From: Mobula hypostoma
Taxonomy: Eukaryota
Direction: 5' to 3'
Assembly: GCF_963921235.1 (NCBI RefSeq)
Contig: NC_086102.1
Coordinates: forward strand, 43,958,001-44,022,000
Length of the DNA: 64,000 nucleotides
Part shown: positions 11,231 to 64,000 of the stretch, one piece after another
Layout of the letters: every line of letters starts with the position of its first letter
Numbering within the stretch: the first letter of the stretch is position 1
Program-made: the position numbers and the translations under genes
The notes under the pieces: generated by a model
Told to the model about the DNA's origin: nothing
Seen by the model: only the letters and a program-made list of their open reading frames with translations
Database searches by the model: none

Positions 11231-12107
11231 GTGGCTCACAGGTCATGTTGCTCCTGGGGTGTTAGTGTAGAGGCTGCATGTTCTGTTGTGACAGCATTGA
11301 GTTTGCTGTTCACACAGCTCTGCACTCAAACAAAGACTTTAAACCCTATCGGGTACAGATGGCTAGGGGTACCCTCACTAAAGGGAGGTTATAGCCACCT
11401 ACTCTTCAAAGGTCAGATCACTTTCTGTTTATCCTCCACGGCCAATACCCACTGTGTGAGTGGTTGATCTCCCCTCTCTACCAAAGAGGAGGTACTTCCA
11501 ACTAGCAAAGTAGTTTAAACACACTTCATTTATTTTTATTAATACTTTTTTTTAGGTAATGTTCTTAAAACACATTTAAAGCACACAGAGCATTTATGTC
11601 TTATAATAGATTTCCAAACTGCAAACAATTTTTAAAACACAAAGGATTTCCAAAATACCGGTACAATTCCTATAAGCTAAAAAGACATACCCACGAGATG
11701 CAGATGAATGAGATGTCCATTGCAGAAATCGAAGGCAGGGGAATGAATTCTATTCACCTTTCTGTCATTCTTCTTATCATTCCTGACTGCTCCTAAAAAG
11801 CCTGACTTCTCTCTAACTGTTGCTTTTTCACTACTTGGTGACTTCACATGCATGTAATGTTTTTCAGATACCTTTGTTGGGAAATTCACACAAATGGTCT
11901 AAAAACTTCTGGGAACAGAGTTCCCAGACACAGGGCCAGACTTTAGGCAGGGCTAGGCTGGGCTGCAGCCCAGGGGCCACAGCTACAGAGGGGCCTAAAA
12001 TAGGGAGCTATCATCATGGTGGACAAAAAAAGTACGAGAGTGGAGCGCAGAAAATTAATAAAGAAACGAGAGAAACAGGACTGTGAGAAAGAAGCATTAA
12101 AAAAGAC

Positions 12108-35375: not shown

Positions 35376-36680
35376 GAAACATAGAAACATAGAAAATAGG
35401 TGCAGGAGTAGGCCATTCGGCCCTTCGAGCCTGCACCACCATTCAGTATGATCATGGCTGGATATCCAACTCAGAACCCTGTACCTGCCTTCTCTCCATA
35501 CCCCCTGATCCCTTTAGCCACAAGGGGCATATCTAACTCCCTCTTAAATATAGCCAATGAACTGGCCTCAATTGTTTCCTGTGGCAGAGAATTCCACAGA
35601 TTCACCACTCTCTGTGTGAAGAAATTTTTCCTCATCTCAGTCCTAAAAGGCTTCCCCTTTATCCTTAAACTGTGACCCCTCGTTCTGGACTTCCCTAACA
35701 TCGAGAACAATCTTCCTGCATCTAGCCTGTCCAATCCCTTTAGGATTTTATACGTTTCAATAAGATCCCCCCTCAATCTTCTAAATTCCAGTGAGTATAA
35801 GCCTAGTCGATCCACTCTTTCTTCATATGGAAGTCCTGCCTTCCCAGGAATCAATCTGATGAACCTTCTTTGCACTCCCTCTATGGCAAGAATGCCCTTC
35901 CTCAGATTAGGGGACCAAATCTGCACACAATACTCCAGGTGTGGTCTCACCAAGGCCTTGTACAACTGCAGTAGTACCTCCCTGCTCCTGTACTCGTATC
36001 CTCTTGCTACGAATGCCAACATACCATTTGCCTTTTTCACCGCCTGCTGTACCTGCATGCCCACTTTCAATGACTGGTGTACAATGACACCCAGGACTCG
36101 TTGCACCTCCCCTTTTCCTAATTGGCCACCATTCTGATAATAATCTGTTTTCCTGTTCTTGCCACCAAAGTGGATAAGCTCACATTTATCCACATTAAAT
36201 TGCATCTGCCATGAATTTTCCCACTCACCTAACCTATCCAAGTCACCCTGCATCCTCTTAGCATCCTCCTCACAGCTAACACTACCGCCCAGCTTCATGT
36301 CATCCACAAACTTGGAGATGCTGCATTTAATTCCCTTGTCTAAATCATTAATATTGTAAACAACTGGGGTCCCAGCAGTGGAGCCTTGTGGTACCCCACT
36401 AGTCAAAGTCTGCCATTCTGAAAAGGTCCTGTTTATTCCCACTCTTTGCTTCCTGTCTGCCAACTAATTCTCTATCCACGTCAATACCATACCCCCAATA
36501 CCGTGTGCTTTAAGTTTGCACACTAATCTCCTGTGTGGGACCTTGTCAAAAGCCTATTGAAAATCCAAATATACCACATCCACTGGTTCTCCCCTATCCA
36601 CTCTACTAGTCACATCCTCAAAAAATTCTATAAGATTCATCAGACATGATTTTCCTTTTACAAATCCATGCTGACTTTGT
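35376..36680 (-). mobile_element. CR1-type LINE 3' part with a 330-aa RT C-terminal ORF and a short-repeat tail
   Basis: ORF 35471-36463 (SGVPQGS, ISKFVDDMKLGG) and a gaaacata tail repeat at 35376-35397. Confidence 0.9.
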
Positions 36681-37209: not shown

Positions 37210-37476
37210 TTATGCAAATTGTTGTAGAGAAAAACTTGTGGTTGTATGGCAATTAGCATTCTGGGCTCTCTTTGACGTGGGACAAACGCTGACTGTGAAG
37301 TTACATACGGGTTCTTCATAGATAAGATTATTTTTATCTTTGACCTTTAAAGCAGCATATTCTGTTTCATGGGCCTGTGCTGGACTTCTCAATTCTTGCC
37401 TTTGCTTCCCCGTGGGAGGATTGCTAAAATAAACAGATGCATATTGCAGAGTTTCATCACTTAAAGAAACGTTAAC
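37210..37476 (-). CDS. Terminal cytoplasmic exon with tyrosine motifs (ITIM LQYASV, ITSM-like TEYAAL, YEEP)
   Basis: A strong acceptor tttttgtgttgcag|GTT (phase 0) is followed by 88 open codons to TAA, in non-repetitive sequence. Confidence 0.8.
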   Translation of the reverse strand, partial: VNVSLSDETLQYASVYFSNPPTGKQRQELRSPAQAHETEYAALKVKDKNNLIYEEPVCNFTVSVCPTSKRAQNANCHTTTSFSLQQFA

Positions 37477-47792: not shown

Positions 47793-47863
47793 TCTGTTTA
47801 CTGAATCTTTCTTCCATTTTCTCTTTGTTTGATTATCAACATTTTTGTCATGGGCTGATGAAT
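47793..47863 (-). CDS. Juxtamembrane cytoplasmic exon (DSSAHDKNVDNQTKRKWKKDSVNR, phase 1-0)
   Basis: tttttatag|...|gtaagt; the frame is open and converts the phase 1 end of the TM exon to the phase 0 start of the terminal exon. Confidence 0.7.
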
Positions 47864-49127: not shown

Positions 49128-49229
49128 CTTTTCCATTCTTGTGTTTACAGCATCGATTATTAATGATCCAGAAGCATAATGGTACAATGAGGATAAGAGT
49201 CAGCAGAGCAAAATAATACTTGGGGAATC
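49128..49229 (-). CDS. Transmembrane exon (GFPKYYFALLTLILIVPLCFWIINNRCCKHKNGK, phase 1-1)
   Basis: ttttgaag|...|gtaatc; a 19-aa uncharged hydrophobic stretch followed by CC and basic residues. Confidence 0.8.
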
Positions 49230-55960: not shown

Positions 55961-58900
55961 CTCCCTCCACTTGTATTCTTTTCTCCTCACAATGACCAAT
56001 AACATAAATAATGCTCAGCTTTCATAATTACTTGCCATCTCTGGGTTACTGGCTGCAGCAAAACACCAGGATCTCTGAATCACAGAGCTCTGTGGTCCCT
56101 TACCTTTTATATGTATCTATACAGTATCTTACATAAAATATATACATTGGATTTCAGTTAATTGGGCCAGAAGTTATTTGGGACAACATTTAAAAAACAA
56201 AAACTAATGGAGAAAACAACCAGGATTCCCTTGGCTTATTTAGGGCAGAAGACTGCTGCTGAACAGTTTCTAACCAGCGTCAGAGGCATGTGCCTGCGTG
56301 GCTGCGTGGCACACTACACTGTGCTTAGAGTGAACAGTTTTTAAACAGTGACAGTTGAGTGTGTTTATGTTCAAGAAGCAATGACTTTTGTCACTGATTT
56401 CTGATGAGAAAAAAGCAGTAAGACAATTCAGAACTGTTTTGTCACTGTGGTTTCAAGCATTCTGGCTTGGAGATTGACGAATCGGCCGGGAGTGAAACTT
56501 GAAATTATTTCACTACTTCAACAAGTTAGGAACTATGAAGAATTTGAGGGTATCAACAATCATCTTGAATGTTAACTTTGCTCCCCACCAGAGTCACATC
56601 TCCCCTGTGGCTCAAAGTAGCTGTTTGCATGCGACAGCAGCCATGCCCTGATACCCTGCTTTGACAGGCAGGCTAAAGCAGGCGAGGGTAGCCAGGGAAG
56701 GGTTTCATACCACAGTGAGATAGGGACATGCCTGCTCTAGCATACAAAGTCATGTCAGGCGGACTGGGTGAATGAAATCTAAAGTGAGATCCAACAGCCA
56801 GGAAGGCAGTTCTGCAACAGTCCATGAACAGCAAAGGATATGATGAGGCAGGGAAGAAGCCATAGTCATCCACTGCAACCAAGGAGACCCCTGTTGTGCT
56901 GTCTGCCCGTATCACTGGATCCGGACTTATGAGGAGACAATGGGACTGTCCTTGGGCAGTGGATTTTCCACTTTAGAAACTTCCCCGCACATCGCTGGAT
57001 AAGACAGCAACCATCAGTAGTTTTGGTAGCATTCCAATTTGTTCTGTATTTCATTTAAATGCATACTTTGTTACTCAGTTAAATGGTAGTTTGTTCTTTT
57101 TATATAATATTTTAACTATTTCTATTAAAGGTTGGCTAATTGGGCCAGGCACTAAAATATACTGGATGGGCCCAATTAACTGTATTAACTATGTATAGAG
57201 GGGGAGAGGGGGAGAGATTATATTTTATATATATATATATTACACAAGAGGGAAAAAACAGAAAATACTGGAAAGACTTGTTAGATCAGACAGCATCTGT
57301 GGAAAGAGAAGCACGGTTAATGTTTCAAGTTAAGGACCTCGTAAGAACACAGTGCAAAACAGGCAGATAGAAATGCCAATGGAGAGAGCAACAGAAATAA
57401 TTTCAGGTGGACATTCCTGGTGGGGAAGTGGTAATGAATTCAGCAATGAATTCATCATCTTTGCTGATGCTGCAAATCTGAATAACAACAGAAAGTGCTG
57501 GAATCACTCATCAGTTCAAGCAGCAGCTGTAGAAAGAACCAGAATGTCAATATTTCAGGATAAAGATCCTACCACATCTTTGTTATTTTTAATTTAGTAC
57601 TTCCTAATTTTTCCCACCAAAGTGTACAATATCCTATTTTTCAATATTATGCTCCAGATGGTGGAACTTCCCAGCTCACTTAAATTTCATTTTGTAATCA
57701 TTTTGTAGCCTGCTTCTATCCTACTTTCCTTCCTGTCCCTGTGTCATCAACAAATTTAGCAATCATTCAGTCAACATCTTCATACAAATCATATATAGCA
57801 TAATAAGAACTCAGAATCAATCTATTTAGCATACCATTTGTTTCATCTTGCCAACTATTTCTGTGTGCTCTCTGCTTTCTGTTCGACTCTCTGGTCTTTT
57901 ATCCCTCCCAACATTAACTTCTACCGTGAGCTTTTAATTTTTGCAAAGACATTTGATGTGCCACCTTATCCAATACCTCTGGAAATCTATATATAGAACA
58001 TCAATAGGGGCCCCTTTAAATAACTCCAATGCATTGGTCAAACATTTCCTCTTGAGAAAACCACGCTGACTTTTCTTTTGATCTTTCTGCACACTATAAT
58101 ATTTTTGACATGCTATAATATTTTAATTACAGCTTCTACTATTTTACCTTTTAACAGATATTAAACTAATTGGCCTGTAGTTTTCTTGGGTTCTATTCCC
58201 CTCCCTTCTTCAATAAAGGGGTTAAAATGCCATTTTCCAGACAAATCGGATTTTCGGGTATTCTGGAAATTGAAAACTGGTGCATCAGCTCTCCCAGGAG
58301 CAGTTTCCTTTAAGACCCTAAGGTGAGGTCCACGAGGATTCAGGGACTTGTCCACGTACAGCTCCGATAATTTGCCCAGTAGTACTACCACGGCGATTGC
58401 AATTCCCCCAATTTCCTCCCTCTCTTCCAATTCCCGATTTACAACTTCTTTTCCATTAATTCCCCAAACTCGCTTTTTGTGGGAGCAGCTCCTGCTGCAG
58501 TCGTTCATTTATGGCTGGCTTTGTCCCACTCTGATTCTTTTTCTTTTATTGGTTGTTCAACCTGCTTGGGAAGTCAGCCTTGTTGGCGGTTCAACTGGAA
58601 CCCTTTAAACATTAATTCTGTTTCCTCTCCGTTTAATTTTTCGCACAGCGCCATGCAATCGTGATTTAGAGCAGGGAAATCTGGAATGATGATGAATTCA
58701 ATTTCAGTGAGAGGCGATTGAAAGGGACACCCCGTCGCAGCCTAAAACTGCAATTTAGCAAGTCATCGTGACCTGGGATTTGATCTTGCAGCGCCCGCCG
58801 AGTGGGCAAGGCACTTGTTCACTGAACACAGAAACTTCGATTTCCTGCGCACTATAGCGATTGGAATTGGCTACAATTTGGCGGGGAGAAAGTGAATTTT

Positions 58901-59169
58901 GCCCTGATAACAATCAATTCCGCTGAATGTTGTTATTTTCTCTATTCACGACCACCCATGAATTGAAAATTCTCTCGGCGGCAAATGATCACAATAAATA
59001 CAATTCGGACGTTGTTTCTTTCCATTGCTATCCTTCCCCGAGCACCGCAACTTTCGGGGTATAAATTCTATGACCCAGCTGAAAGTGTTGCAATTGGCCA
59101 CCTAGTGCAGTTTATAAACCGTGGAATTTCAACTGTCAATTGATGAAGACAGTATAAATTAGATTAATT

Positions 59170-59213
59170 TTACAATATGAACTTTGCGTTGCCAAGTAGT
59201 ATCGGCCAGGGAC
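59170..59213 (-). other. Candidate alternative or degenerate terminal exon (GPWPILLGNAKFIL*)
   Basis: The acceptor gtgcccttccccag|GT lies 587 nt after C1b in phase 1. A hydrophobic continuation, INLIYTVFIN, is in a shifted frame. Confidence 0.35.
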
Positions 59214-59800
59214 CTGGGGAAGGGCACTAACCCAGACAGGACGATGGACGAAGTCCGGTAAAATTCTACTTTTTTTTCGCCATTTATATTTTACAGTATT
59301 GAGTTTTGTTTGATTGGATTTATATGAATTGGTTCATTAGATAATATCTGTAGCCTATTGCCATAATTCGTGAATGTGTTTTGCAGTAACGCTGTTCCGA
59401 AAAAGAATACTTCGTTGGTGCAAGCGCACGAAGAAACAAAATGTTGGAGATATTAGCAGATCACGCGGGTTGTGTAGAAAGTAAACGACAGTGTATGCTT
59501 CAGGTCCAGGGACCAAGGTCATGGTAGCCTCAGCTCTTGTCTCTATCCAATTCCTTTCATAAACCTTCACAAGTAGCAAATTATTTGAAACATTCACGAT
59601 AACACACAGCGCAAGTTTTCTATCAATTCAATAAATTGGAATAAATTATTTCGCAATAAAAGACTGTAGATATTGTAGGCGTTACCCGAACGAATTGCGT
59701 TCAACATATGGTTTTATAAATTTACAAATTTTATCTCCAAATTTCACCCGTAATTGGGAGAAGCAGGTTGTGAGATTTTCTCCCCGTGTAAACCACCTAC

Positions 59801-60094
59801 CTCGGTTGAAAGTGAAACTTGTGCTCACACTCCCTGTAACGTGTCGAACCAGGCAGGTGGCGACCTGAACTGACTCCCGCCGAGCGTCGTTCACCCGCAG
59901 CCGGGAGCTCAGGCTGTAGGTAAGGTCCTCGTTTACCCTCAGCGGATCCGCCTCTGTTTCATACGAGACATCTCCCGTTACAGTCCAAGAAATATTCAGA
60001 TCTTTCGGGAAAAATCCCGCAGCTACACAAATCAGGGTCTGAACCCCAGTGGCTTCGTTGTTGGGATCCAGAGAGAGGGAGACGTCAGGCTTCG
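59801..60094 (-). CDS. Ig C1-set exon 2 (C1b), phase 1-1
   Basis: tgtgcag|CG...CGA G|gtaggt; motifs LICVAAGFFPKDLNISW, DLTYSLSSRL and TCLVRH. Confidence 0.93.
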
Positions 60095-60673
60095 CTGCAC
60101 AGAACGGGAGAATTAACACATTGTGAATTTTACTGTAACCCAGACTGATACAGACAGCAAGAGTGGACACAACTGAAGACGGTGCATGATATAAAGGTAA
60201 CACTGAACTGAATTGATTATTTTGTGTCTCAAAATTCGCACCGGCAGGAAGAGAAACAAAATACAGCCCGAGAACGGAATGAATTTGGAATGTTACAGCG
60301 AGTGTAAATAAAAAAAGATGCTGGAGATTTAGAATGTTAAAAAAACAGAACCGCCGGAAGTATCCAGCTGGTCTGGTCGAAGAGACGCAGAGTTCTGACG
60401 AAAGGTCTTCAATACCAAATTTTAACTCTGTTTCTCTCTCCACATTTGCGACCTGACCTGCTGAGTGTTTCCAGCACGTTCTAGTTTTATTTTTCAGTTC
60501 TTTTCGACCAGGCACATGTTGGTCACAAGATGCAAGTTACGCTGGTAGGATGTTCCAACAAGGATGTTTCACGGTTCCGATTCCCCATTAAAAATCCCTA
60601 ATTTTACTTCCAAATTTCACCCGTAGTTGAGAGAAGCAGGTTGTGAGATTTACTCCGTGTGTAAACCACCTAC

Positions 60674-60967
60674 CTCGGTTGAAAGTGAAATTTGTCCTCA
60701 CACTCCCTGTAACGTGTCGAACCAGGCAGGTGGCGACGGGAACTGACTCCCGCCGAGCGTCGTTCACCCGCAGCCGGGAGCTCAGGTTGTAGGTAAGGTC
60801 CTCGTTTACCCTCAGCGGATCCGCCTTTGTTTCATACGAGACATCTCCCGTTACAGTCCAAGAAATATTCAGATCTTTCGGGAAAAATCCCGCCGCCACA
60901 CAAATCAGGGTCTGAACCCCAGCGGCTTCGTTCTTGGGATTCAGAGAGAGGGAGACATCAGGCTTCG
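60674..60967 (-). CDS. Ig C1-set exon 1 (C1a), phase 1-1
   Basis: Same splice signals and motifs as C1b, with 12 nt differences in 294. Confidence 0.93.
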
Positions 60968-61832
60968 CTGCACATAACGGGAAAATTAACACATTGTGAA
61001 TTTTACTGTAACCCAGATGGATACAGACAGCAAGAGTGGACACAGCTGAAGACGGTGCATGATACAAAGGTAACACTCTGAACCGAGTTGATTATTTTGT
61101 GCCTTAAAATTTCACACCGGCAAGAAGAGAAACAAAATACAGCCCGGGAACGGAATGAATTTGAAATGTTACTGCGCGTGAAAATAAAAAAAAAGATGCC
61201 GGAGATCAAAAATAATTTTTTTGAAAAACAGAACCCGTTGGAAATATCCAGCAGGTCAGGTCGGAGAGTCGAACATGTCCAACGAAAGTTCTTCAATACC
61301 AACCGTTAACTCTGCTTCTCTCTCCGCATCTGTGACCTGACCTGCTGAGTGTTTCCAGCACTTTCTAGTTTTATTGTTCAGCTCCTTTCGACCAGACATA
61401 CATTGGTCAGAAGATGCAAATTACACTGGCAGTGTGTCCCAACAAGGACGTTTCGCGGTTCCGATTCCCCATTACCAATTCCTCCGGTGTTTAACCGATT
61501 TCTGATCGGCTATTTTACCCGCCTCTCTACCACTGAATTTTTGGGATGTGGCGCTGATGTATTCAGCGACAAGTCTTCTCTTCCCCATGCGGGAGATTGT
61601 TTCGGTGTTGCTTAATCTGGTTACTTTGGGTCAGAAGCAAAACACAAACCAAACGCGGCGAAGACAGGATTCCTTCAGCAAGTCAGAGGGCGTTTGGAGA
61701 AAGGGACCTAAAGACTCGTTTTCCAGCTCGGCCATTGGTCTGAGACTTTGGCCCCAGTTCCCTCGCTTCACACTTTGCCCGGTGTGCTGAGTATTTCCAG
61801 TGTTTACTGGTTTCGTTTCATACGTACTGTAC

Positions 61833-62165
61833 CTCGGATGGTTACTTCTGTTCCGTTTCCAAAATATGTTTCCCAGGGTCTCGAATCCATTATCAGCGCT
61901 GAGCAATGGTAGGTGTCAGAGTCATCCACAGTCACTTCCCGAATGACCAGCCCGCCTTCCTTCACAGATACAGAGAACCGAGTGCCATTTTTCAGGAAAT
62001 TATTGGACCCGTTTACAGAATGGTCTCTAATCCGAGTCCAATAATATCTCGCCGAATCCACCCGCTCGTCCCCGGATAACAGGGAACAGCCGATCCGAGC
62101 TGTCTGTCCTCGGAGAAGGGTCAGAGCTGAAGGTGTCTGATTCACTTTCAGAGCAACAATTGGCC
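61833..62165 (-). CDS. Single-exon germline VJ-type Ig V domain, phase 1-1
   Basis: ttttctgttctag|GG...CGA G|gtacag; IGC, YYW and DSDTYHC motifs, and a J-like YFGNGTEVTI in the same exon. Confidence 0.93.
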
Positions 62166-62258
62166 CTAGAACAGAAAATCACCACAATTAGCAAAAAGAT
62201 TCAAAATTATGAGAAGGCAACGAGAATAAATGTCAAACGGAGAGAACGCGTGAATTAC

Positions 62259-62307
62259 CGGGGAGAAACAGCCAGAGCGTGTACAGTAAGATTCCGAGTA
62301 GTGACAT
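62259..62307 (-). CDS. Signal-peptide exon MSLLGILLYTLWLFLP(G)
   Basis: ATG at 62307, 16 hydrophobic codons, G|gtaatt donor, and a 93-nt intron in frame with the V exon. Confidence 0.9.
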
Positions 62308-62356
62308 GTTGGGTGAAGGAAGAGTCGGGGCAGGAATCACCCAGCTCTGATGGTCA

Positions 62357-62416
62357 TTTTATAAAGTGTAAAATCGCTGCAGAATTTGTGGCGGTTTCAC
62401 TTCAGTGCGTCACGTG
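62357..62416 (-). promoter_or_regulatory. Putative proximal promoter of the VJ-C1-C1 gene
   Basis: TATAAAA 50 nt upstream of the ATG (62357-62363), IRF/Ets-like GAAGTGAAAC (62394-62403) and an E-box CACGTG (62411-62416). Motif matches only. Confidence 0.4.
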
Positions 62417-63329
62417 TGGCAGACTGGCGGAAAGTTTAATTAAACAACTCTTCAATCGTTCCAAGCATTGGCCGTCTTGCACTGACAACTGATGAAATAG
62501 GCAAACGAGAAGCTGGAATTTGTAAATAACCACTGAAAATATTTTCTGAAAAGCTAGCAGATGCACTTAAGTAAAAACGAAAACATTTTGGCAACGTTCA
62601 GCAGGTCAGAGAGCATCCAGAGAAAAATATGAGAAAAAATTTTTATCATTTCTGAGAGAAAGTGTGATTCAAGAGACTCAGGGGTAATGCTGTGCTGGAA
62701 GAACAAGGTGAATGAGCAGCATCTGTGGGAGGGAAGTTCGCATGGAGACGCTGCATCGGTACTGAGTTATCGTTTCATTGAGACATGAAACAGAAAAGCA
62801 GAAAATATGTCGCTGCCGGACTTGCTGAGAGGAGCATCTTAAGTTCTCATTTCAGCAAATGATCACCTGCTTTAAGAGATCGATCACTCAAGCGAGGTGA
62901 GGACTTGTCCGCTGTGAATGGTTGGTATCGAGAAATACCGGCTGAGTCTTAGAGTCACGGAACAATAGGGCCCGAACGCAGCGCCGTCGGTTCAACCAGC
63001 CCACGCAGACCACGTTATCCATCTCTAGCCAGTTCCAATTTCCTGCATTCAGCCCATATCCCTCCAGGCCCCTTCCCTCAAGTGGTTCTTATATAATACT
63101 ATTGCACATGATTTTTGCACTATTTAGAAATTTTATGTCTTATCACTGTACCGCTGCCACGAATTCTGCGACATATTTCAATATTAATAAACCTGATTCT
63201 CATTCTGATACTGGTTTTTCCTCAACCACTTCTTCTGGCAGCTTGTTCCCTATACTCATCACCCTCTGCGTGGGAAAAGTTGTCCCTGGGATCCCTTTTA
63301 AATTTCCCCCCTCATCCTAAATTTATGCC

Positions 63330-64000
63330 TGTCATAAGTGGGGTGCTGGGAGCGGACCCAAATGCAAGACACAGACACTGAAGTACTAGGAACCGGACTA
63401 GAGTTAGGGACGGGACTGGATGCAGACTAGGAGCTGGGACAAGAACACAGACTTGGGCTAGGACTTGACTAGGAAAGCGGGACCTGGACGAGGAACTAGG
63501 AACTTGGAACCTGGACAAGGACTCCGAGCCAGAGACTGGACAAGGACCCGAAACCTGGGTCTTGACTCGGGCTCGGACCCCGGATCCAAGCAAGGAGATG
63601 ACGTGGCTACAGGACTGGACGACGCACATGGACAGGACGAGAACACAAAGCCTGACTTGGACAGGACTTGGACTAGACGAGGTTCTTGGACGTGGCCAGG
63701 ACTAGACGAGGTTCTTGGACAGGACGAGAGACTCCAGCACAGGACGAAGGAACTCCAGCACCGGGCTGGACGAGAACACGAAACCCTGATTTGGTCGACG
63801 GAAAGACAGGAACGCAGAGCCTTGGTCGAGGGAGAGAGGAACATGGAACACAGAGCCGGGACCCCTCCTTGGGAACAGGACGTAGGGCCAGGACTCATAC
63901 ACAGAATGCAGAACACAACGAGATGTTTCTCAACACTAGGTAGCAGCAAACGGCCAGACCTACCTAGCGAAGGTGTGGACACAGAGACAGTTCAAAACAA
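63330..64000. mobile_element. LTR-like repeat with internal tandem arrays, truncated by the window end
   Basis: Similar to 4682-5480 from TGTCATAAG onward. Confidence 0.65.

Follow-up and report, generated by a model that had tools for sequence, protein, structure and literature searches.

The receptor gene studied here, from the lesser devil ray, Mobula hypostoma, carries two closely similar C1 exons in tandem. How old is this pair, and what keeps its members so alike? The original prediction, made from the letters of the window (the whole stretch of DNA that was analysed, 64,000 nucleotides, positions 43,958,001 to 44,022,000 of NC_086102.1), was that the two-C1 architecture came from a very recent exon duplication. 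Our analysis confirmed that the feature is a real tandem duplication, with a unit of approximately 0.87 kb, inside a SIRP-alpha-like receptor gene. The age proposed for it is examined below.

The exons were mapped by tblastn of homologues onto the window, and an exact splice model was then built. The seven-exon model, on the minus strand, translates to 469 amino acids and a stop codon, and the product is identical to RefSeq XP_062908587.1 (P0016). The span of the model also agrees with the 25,098 bp on record for the gene in GCA_963921235.1. In window positions, the exons are:

62259..62307, minus strand: exon 1, start codon and leader peptide, ending in phase 1
61833..62165, minus strand: exon 2, germline-joined VJ domain with the J-like motif FGNGTEVTI; Pfam V-set match
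60674..60967, minus strand: exon 3 (C1a), 294 nt, phase 1-1, with the sequons YNLS and TNFT; Pfam C1-set match
59801..60094, minus strand: exon 4 (C1b), 294 nt, phase 1-1; Pfam C1-set match
49128..49229, minus strand: exon 5, transmembrane segment (GFPKYYFALLTLILIVPLCFWII...), from tblastn and the splice model
47793..47863, minus strand: exon 6, cytoplasmic segment, from tblastn and the splice model
37210..37476, minus strand: exon 7, cytoplasmic tail with LQYASV (ITIM-like) and TEYAAL (ITSM-like), and the stop codon

Exon 2 ends in ...YFGNGTEVTIR, which places an FGxGT-type J-like motif in the same exon as the V-set domain. Pfam marks one V-set and two C1-set stretches on XP_062908587.1. The layout of the product is L-VJ-C1-C1-TM-ITIM, and it is SIRP-alpha-like in the RefSeq annotation. 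The two-C1 protein is already predicted by RefSeq, and the annotation is therefore unchanged. With its LQYASV and TEYAAL tail motifs, the gene is predicted to encode an inhibitory receptor. The AlphaFold model of the protein is weak (pLDDT 61 overall, below 50 in the V domain); both C1 domains are modelled as beta-sandwiches (pLDDT approximately 70–87). With this query model of pLDDT 61, Foldseek did not tell V-C1-C1 chains apart (TM 0.2–0.36).

Three other features of the window were recorded. Just upstream of exon 1, at 63468-63761, there are three short minisatellite-like tandem arrays with periods of 27, 29, and 21 nt and 2–2.7 copies. Just downstream of exon 7, a 330-aa open reading frame (35474-36463, minus strand) gives a weak RVT_1 match (E 1.5e-4, below the gathering score) and is probably what remains of a retroelement. 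A run of 144 N at 2325-2468 is an assembly gap or a masked stretch.

Both a repeat search and local alignment show that the C1 exon is duplicated head-to-tail on the minus strand, and that the two units abut without a gap. The repeat search of the window places the direct repeats at a spacing of 873–884 bp. The units are:

60600..61483, minus strand: duplication unit a, 884 bp, in which the C1a exon is preceded by 516 bp of intron and followed by 74 bp
59727..60599, minus strand: duplication unit b, 873 bp, abutting unit a exactly

The 873-bp head-to-tail duplication that had been proposed at 59725-61473 is thus borne out, to within approximately 10 bp of the span 59727-61483. In the local alignment, unit a differs from unit b by 84 substitutions and 11 indel columns over 884 columns. 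The splice sites are conserved. The acceptors of C1a and C1b are near-identical (...TGTGCAG followed by exonic CG), and the donors are identical (exonic CGAG followed by GTAGGT). The canonical Cys-Trp-Cys core is present in both exons. Exon comparison gave the same counts as had been noted earlier: 12 of the 294 nucleotides differ (4.1%), with 8 amino-acid changes, one of which (P77Q) involves two nucleotides, together with 3 synonymous changes. Also as noted, the YNLS and TNFT sequons occur only in C1a, and their counterparts in C1b are YSLS and TSFT. Comparison across species shows that these two differences have opposite histories: N61 (in YNLS) is ancestral and was lost from C1b, whereas N93 (in TNFT) is the derived state in C1a.

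Two exons in the genome need not mean two domains in the receptor. C1a and C1b might be mutually exclusive, or the second copy might be a copy-number polymorphism or an assembly artefact, in which case the mature receptor would have one C1 domain. Both exons are of phase 1-1 and 294 nt long, so that skipping either preserves the frame. However, the RefSeq models of M. hypostoma, M. birostris, and Hypanus include both exons. The intron between C1a and C1b is 579 nt long and double inclusion stays in frame, which leaves neither a steric nor a nonsense-mediated-decay mechanism for exclusivity. As for an artefact, the pair, at 11% unit divergence with indels, is far above chance; it is unlike a haplotype-duplication assembly artefact, and this argues against a collapsed or duplicated haplotype. 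The layout is also the same in related species that were assembled independently. We consider a one-C1 receptor improbable on these grounds. Judged from the predicted RefSeq models, C1a and C1b are most likely spliced in together, giving a stalk longer by one Ig domain. A search with the 162-aa open reading frame around C1a for exon-level fragments returned only known RefSeq proteins.

The number of C1 domains in related proteins shows which state came first. One C1 domain is present in the sharks Heterodontus, Heptranchias, Hemiscyllium, and Scyliorhinus (P0007-P0011, P0013), in Narcine bancroftii (P0012), and in both proteins of Pristis pectinata (P0019, with an inhibitory tail, and P0020, with an activating-type transmembrane segment). 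For Narcine this was also observed in DNA: at the genomic locus, both M. hypostoma C1 domains match one exon (11493-11795), which lies between the VJ and TM exons. Two C1 domains are present at the protein level in the M. birostris orthologue (P0001), in both isoforms of the orthologue of the dasyatid Hypanus sabinus (P0002, P0017), and in a Hemitrygon akajei paralogue with an activating-type transmembrane segment (P0018). Single-C1 activating paralogues are also present (P0003, P0004). The representative search found no closer relatives beyond the elasmobranch clusters. The suggestion that the ancestor was VJ-C1 therefore holds, with one C1 in four sharks, Pristis, and Narcine. From this one-C1 ancestral state it follows that the V-C1-C1 layout seen here is secondary and independent of that of mammalian SIRP, again as had been proposed.

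Two further observations concern individual proteins. In the M. birostris paralogue XP_072116485.1 (P0006, 221 aa), the last approximately 38 residues (PELPAAGERLP...KFHFQAR) match an out-of-frame translation of the C1 exon (compared with 60674-60967), which points to a frameshift in the C1 exon of this gene; it may be either a pseudogene or an assembly indel. In Pristis pectinata, P0019 and P0020 have C1 domains that are 100% identical and VJ domains that are near-identical, with an ITIM tail in one and a charged transmembrane segment in the other. From their sequences, this would be a textbook paired-receptor pattern in a sawfish.

The divergence between the two units is not uniform. A change-point scan delimited a tract in which the copies are much more alike:

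60663..61160, minus strand: low-divergence tract in unit a, a candidate gene-conversion tract from the change-point scan
59790..60284, minus strand: low-divergence tract in unit b, the partner of 60663-61160

Within this 495-bp tract the units differ at 25/495 positions (5.05%), and outside it at 59/378 (15.6%). The likelihood ratio of the scan was reached in 0/300 permutations. The contrast is not confined to the exon. The 190 bp of intron within the tract differ at 13 positions (6.8%), compared with 52/315 (16.5%) in the outer 5' intron (p = 0.0015). The dS of the exon is 0.047, which is like the tract and unlike the outer intron (p about 0.003–0.01). The outer part of the unit on the 3' side comprises just 74 bp, with 7 differences.

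We considered what could lower the divergence of the tract. Purifying selection on the protein can be discarded as the cause of the low exon divergence: dN/dS is 0.86, and the low divergence is common to silent and non-coding sites, with the synonymous sites and the 190 bp of intron low as well. Nor can CpG hypermutability of the outer intron be the whole explanation, since the contrast between the tract and the outside remains when CpG contexts are excluded. Most of the outer 5' part of the unit derives from transposons, and a higher mutation rate or poorer alignment there could by itself account for its greater divergence. The simplest reading of the tract is a conversion event over an older duplication. 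Conversion is read here from one genome together with protein comparisons, and the uneven divergence was observed directly.

The dN/dS of 0.86 between C1a and C1b comes from few differences (Sd 3.5, Nd 8.5) and has low power. An omega below 0.3 is rejected (p about 0.04), and an omega of 1–3 is not rejected, again at low power. These values are compatible with near-neutral or weakly diversifying evolution of the C1 copies, and hence with the near-neutral substitution pattern described in the original prediction.

How old, then, is the duplication? The lineages of M. hypostoma and the manta (M. birostris) are thought to have split approximately 20 Mya (bioRxiv 10.64898/2026.10.27.761883). The common ancestor of the pelagic stingrays dates to the Late Cretaceous (PMC7614867), and the split from Dasyatidae is therefore at least that old. 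Had the exon been duplicated very recently, in the M. hypostoma lineage alone, with the copies now drifting neutrally, this would account for exons that are just 4.1% diverged and for their dN/dS. Such an origin does not account for the two-C1 layout of the M. birostris orthologue and of Hypanus, or for an outer intron that is 15–16% diverged in a lineage documented as slow-evolving (PMC10587355). The protein distances also speak against it. C1a and C1b of M. hypostoma differ at 8/98 residues, and any C1 of M. hypostoma differs from any C1 of M. birostris at 8–10. The distance between the copies equals that between the two Mobula species; being at least as large, it implies that the copies arose no later than about the time of the species split. 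A very recent origin is thus very improbable, and this part of the original prediction was not borne out: two C1 domains are found in M. birostris, in Hypanus, and in the Hemitrygon paralogue, and the outer unit is too diverged. By rough calibration only, if about 5% corresponds to roughly the age of the Mobula split (approximately 20 My), then approximately 17% (Jukes–Cantor corrected) would correspond to 60–80 My. We infer from this no more than an age compatible with a Late Cretaceous origin.

If the duplication is old, the copies should bear traces of what has kept them similar. A maximum-likelihood tree of the C1 domains puts those of all the stingrays together in a single clade (99/93), whatever their position or gene type. 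The five dasyatid C1 domains also form a clade (98/98), regardless of a or b position and of gene type, and the Mobula domains are unresolved in this tree. Individual sites are mosaic. A71 is present in C1b of the inhibitory gene of M. birostris, Hypanus, and M. hypostoma, and elsewhere only in C1a of M. hypostoma. N69 is a species-specific state in all three M. hypostoma C1 exons, which belong to two genes. The activating paralogue shares K48 with C1a and S61 with C1b. Together with the 100% C1 identity in Pristis, the lineage-wise clustering and the mosaic site patterns have the marks of concerted evolution, as far as protein sequences can tell. An old pair homogenised by gene conversion and shared with distant elasmobranchs is the outcome that the original prediction had set against its own reading, and it is essentially what was found: other stingrays have two C1 domains, and these cluster by lineage.

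Clustering by lineage is equally expected if the exon was duplicated independently in several lineages. In such a history there would have been recurrent duplications of moderate age and without conversion, one on the Mobula stem and one each in the inhibitory and the activating gene of dasyatids. The C1 domains do cluster by lineage and not by position, C1a and C1b of the Hemitrygon activating paralogue differ at just 3 residues, one-C1 and two-C1 paralogues coexist, and a tandem repeat by its nature allows copies to be gained and lost. Yet at least three hits on the same exon are required, and A71 is common to C1b of Mobula and Hypanus. Nor do recurrent duplications explain why divergence changes threefold along the unit, intron and synonymous sites included. 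Finally, the near-identical ectodomains on different tails in Pristis indicate that homogenisation operates in the SIRP-like family. We regard recurrent duplication as unlikely, although it keeps appreciable weight. A related proposal, that C1 number is labile and that V-C1-C1 was made repeatedly in stingrays, perhaps under selection to match the stalk lengths of inhibitory and activating receptors, seems to us doubtful. If it were true, the repeated V-C1-C1 origins would be a natural replicate experiment in the convergent re-invention of the SIRP ectodomain.

The intron in each unit contains a repeat, which bears on how the duplication arose:

61230..61420, minus strand: dispersed-repeat fragment in unit a, with its partner in unit b at approximately 60350-60515

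This repeat includes an imperfect long hairpin at 61246-61350 on the plus strand (arms CAGCAGGTCAGGTC... / ...GACCTGACCTGCTG; partner at approximately 60365-60470). The hairpin gives a sub-threshold Rfam match to mir-2329 (23 bits, compared with a gathering score of 90). It is probably the palindromic core of a decayed transposon tail. The repeat as a whole may be the decayed tail of a Penelope-like element (PLE); an Rfam search of 59000-62500 gave no hammerhead match at E <= 1. A third copy, inverted and weak (75%, approximately 65 bp), lies at 57481-57543 in the 10.5-kb intron between C1b and the TM exon. The original prediction had described a PLE-derived repeat in each copy as a possible substrate for unequal crossover. 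A repeat is indeed present in each unit, but its PLE identity was not confirmed by Rfam, and crossover between flanking copies is not supported as the origin. We looked around the pair for a flanking third copy of the repeat and for microhomology at the junctions, and found neither. With one copy inside each unit and none flanking the pair, an origin by crossover between flanking repeats is excluded. The repeat pair is instead a product of the duplication, and it is the tandem pair as a whole that is now a substrate for unequal exchange.

Taken together, we favour an old duplication of the C1 exon in the stingray lineage, the copies of which were kept similar by gene conversion and have since evolved under weak constraint. 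We give this reading a probability of about 0.65. In this old duplication, an ancestral L-VJ-C1-TM-ITIM receptor would have become L-VJ-C1-C1-TM-ITIM by duplication of approximately 0.87 kb, made up of the C1 exon with approximately 505 bp of the intron before it and 74 bp of the intron after it. The event would predate the split of M. hypostoma and M. birostris (approximately 20 Mya). By parsimony and one diagnostic residue (A71), with layouts compared at the protein level, it would have had a single origin, most likely on the stem of the stingrays (Myliobatiformes) once Pristis had branched off, no later than the Late Cretaceous. From time to time, gene conversion would then have homogenised C1a and C1b, with the two tandem copies as partners and with short patches contributed by paralogous activating genes. 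The latest conversion would have left the tract of approximately 0.5 kb at approximately 5% inside a unit otherwise 15–16% diverged, and the C1 exons would have been evolving under weak constraint since.

If this is correct, the locus shows how the duplication of one exon can turn a V-C1 ancestor into a receptor with a V-C1-C1 ectodomain, the layout of mammalian SIRP. The gain of C1 would fall on the stingray branch of a family of elasmobranch receptors that has otherwise gone unstudied. The locus also carries a caution for dating. The similarity of the exons would have underestimated the age of the duplication about threefold, conversion having reset the clock.

Several known systems resemble the ray gene in part. 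UrIg and UrIg2 are non-rearranging, germline-joined VJ-C1 genes of elasmobranchs (PMC12227049; PMC10751288), and the ray gene likewise is an elasmobranch gene with a germline-joined VJ and C1. UrIg2 is a V-C1-C2-C3 antibody-like dimer, whereas the product of the ray gene is a transmembrane receptor with an ITIM tail and with only C1-type constant domains. Identity with UrIg is thus excluded on architecture. Neither of the two UrIg papers (PMC12227049 and PMC10751288) mentions SIRP or ITIM.

The resemblance to mammalian SIRP is closer in layout. From its N-terminus, the product of the ray gene runs from a V domain with a J-like motif through C1-set domains and one transmembrane segment to an inhibitory tail with tyrosine motifs. 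As in the SIRP family, there are paralogues with a charged residue in the transmembrane segment (P0003, P0018, P0020). By Pfam, the two membrane-proximal C1-set domains also match SIRP, but the orthologues in sharks, Narcine, and Pristis have one, and the match is secondary: the elasmobranch ancestral gene had one C1, and the second comes from a separate, stingray-specific exon duplication. Among solved structures in the PDB, the sequence matches were a Fab (2e-21), SIRP-alpha (PDB ID: 2wng; 9e-21, the best non-antibody match), IgA (3e-19), and UrIg2 (PDB ID: 9dmx; 1.6e-17), and SIRP-gamma and TCR-beta were also among the closest. Matches to bird SIRP-like proteins have 26–30% identity. The term SIRP-like is therefore fair for the layout and the tail, and membership of the SIRP family is not proven by these sequences.

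Concerted evolution of Ig-domain exons occurs in the paired receptors KIR, LILR, and SIRP-alpha/beta. The elasmobranch genes share several of its features. Within a species, inhibitory and activating genes have near-identical ectodomain exons but different tails, substitutions are mosaic, and a short tract of low divergence lies amid more diverged flanks. They differ from KIR, LILR, and SIRP in one respect: here the conversion partners would include two tandem exons of one gene.
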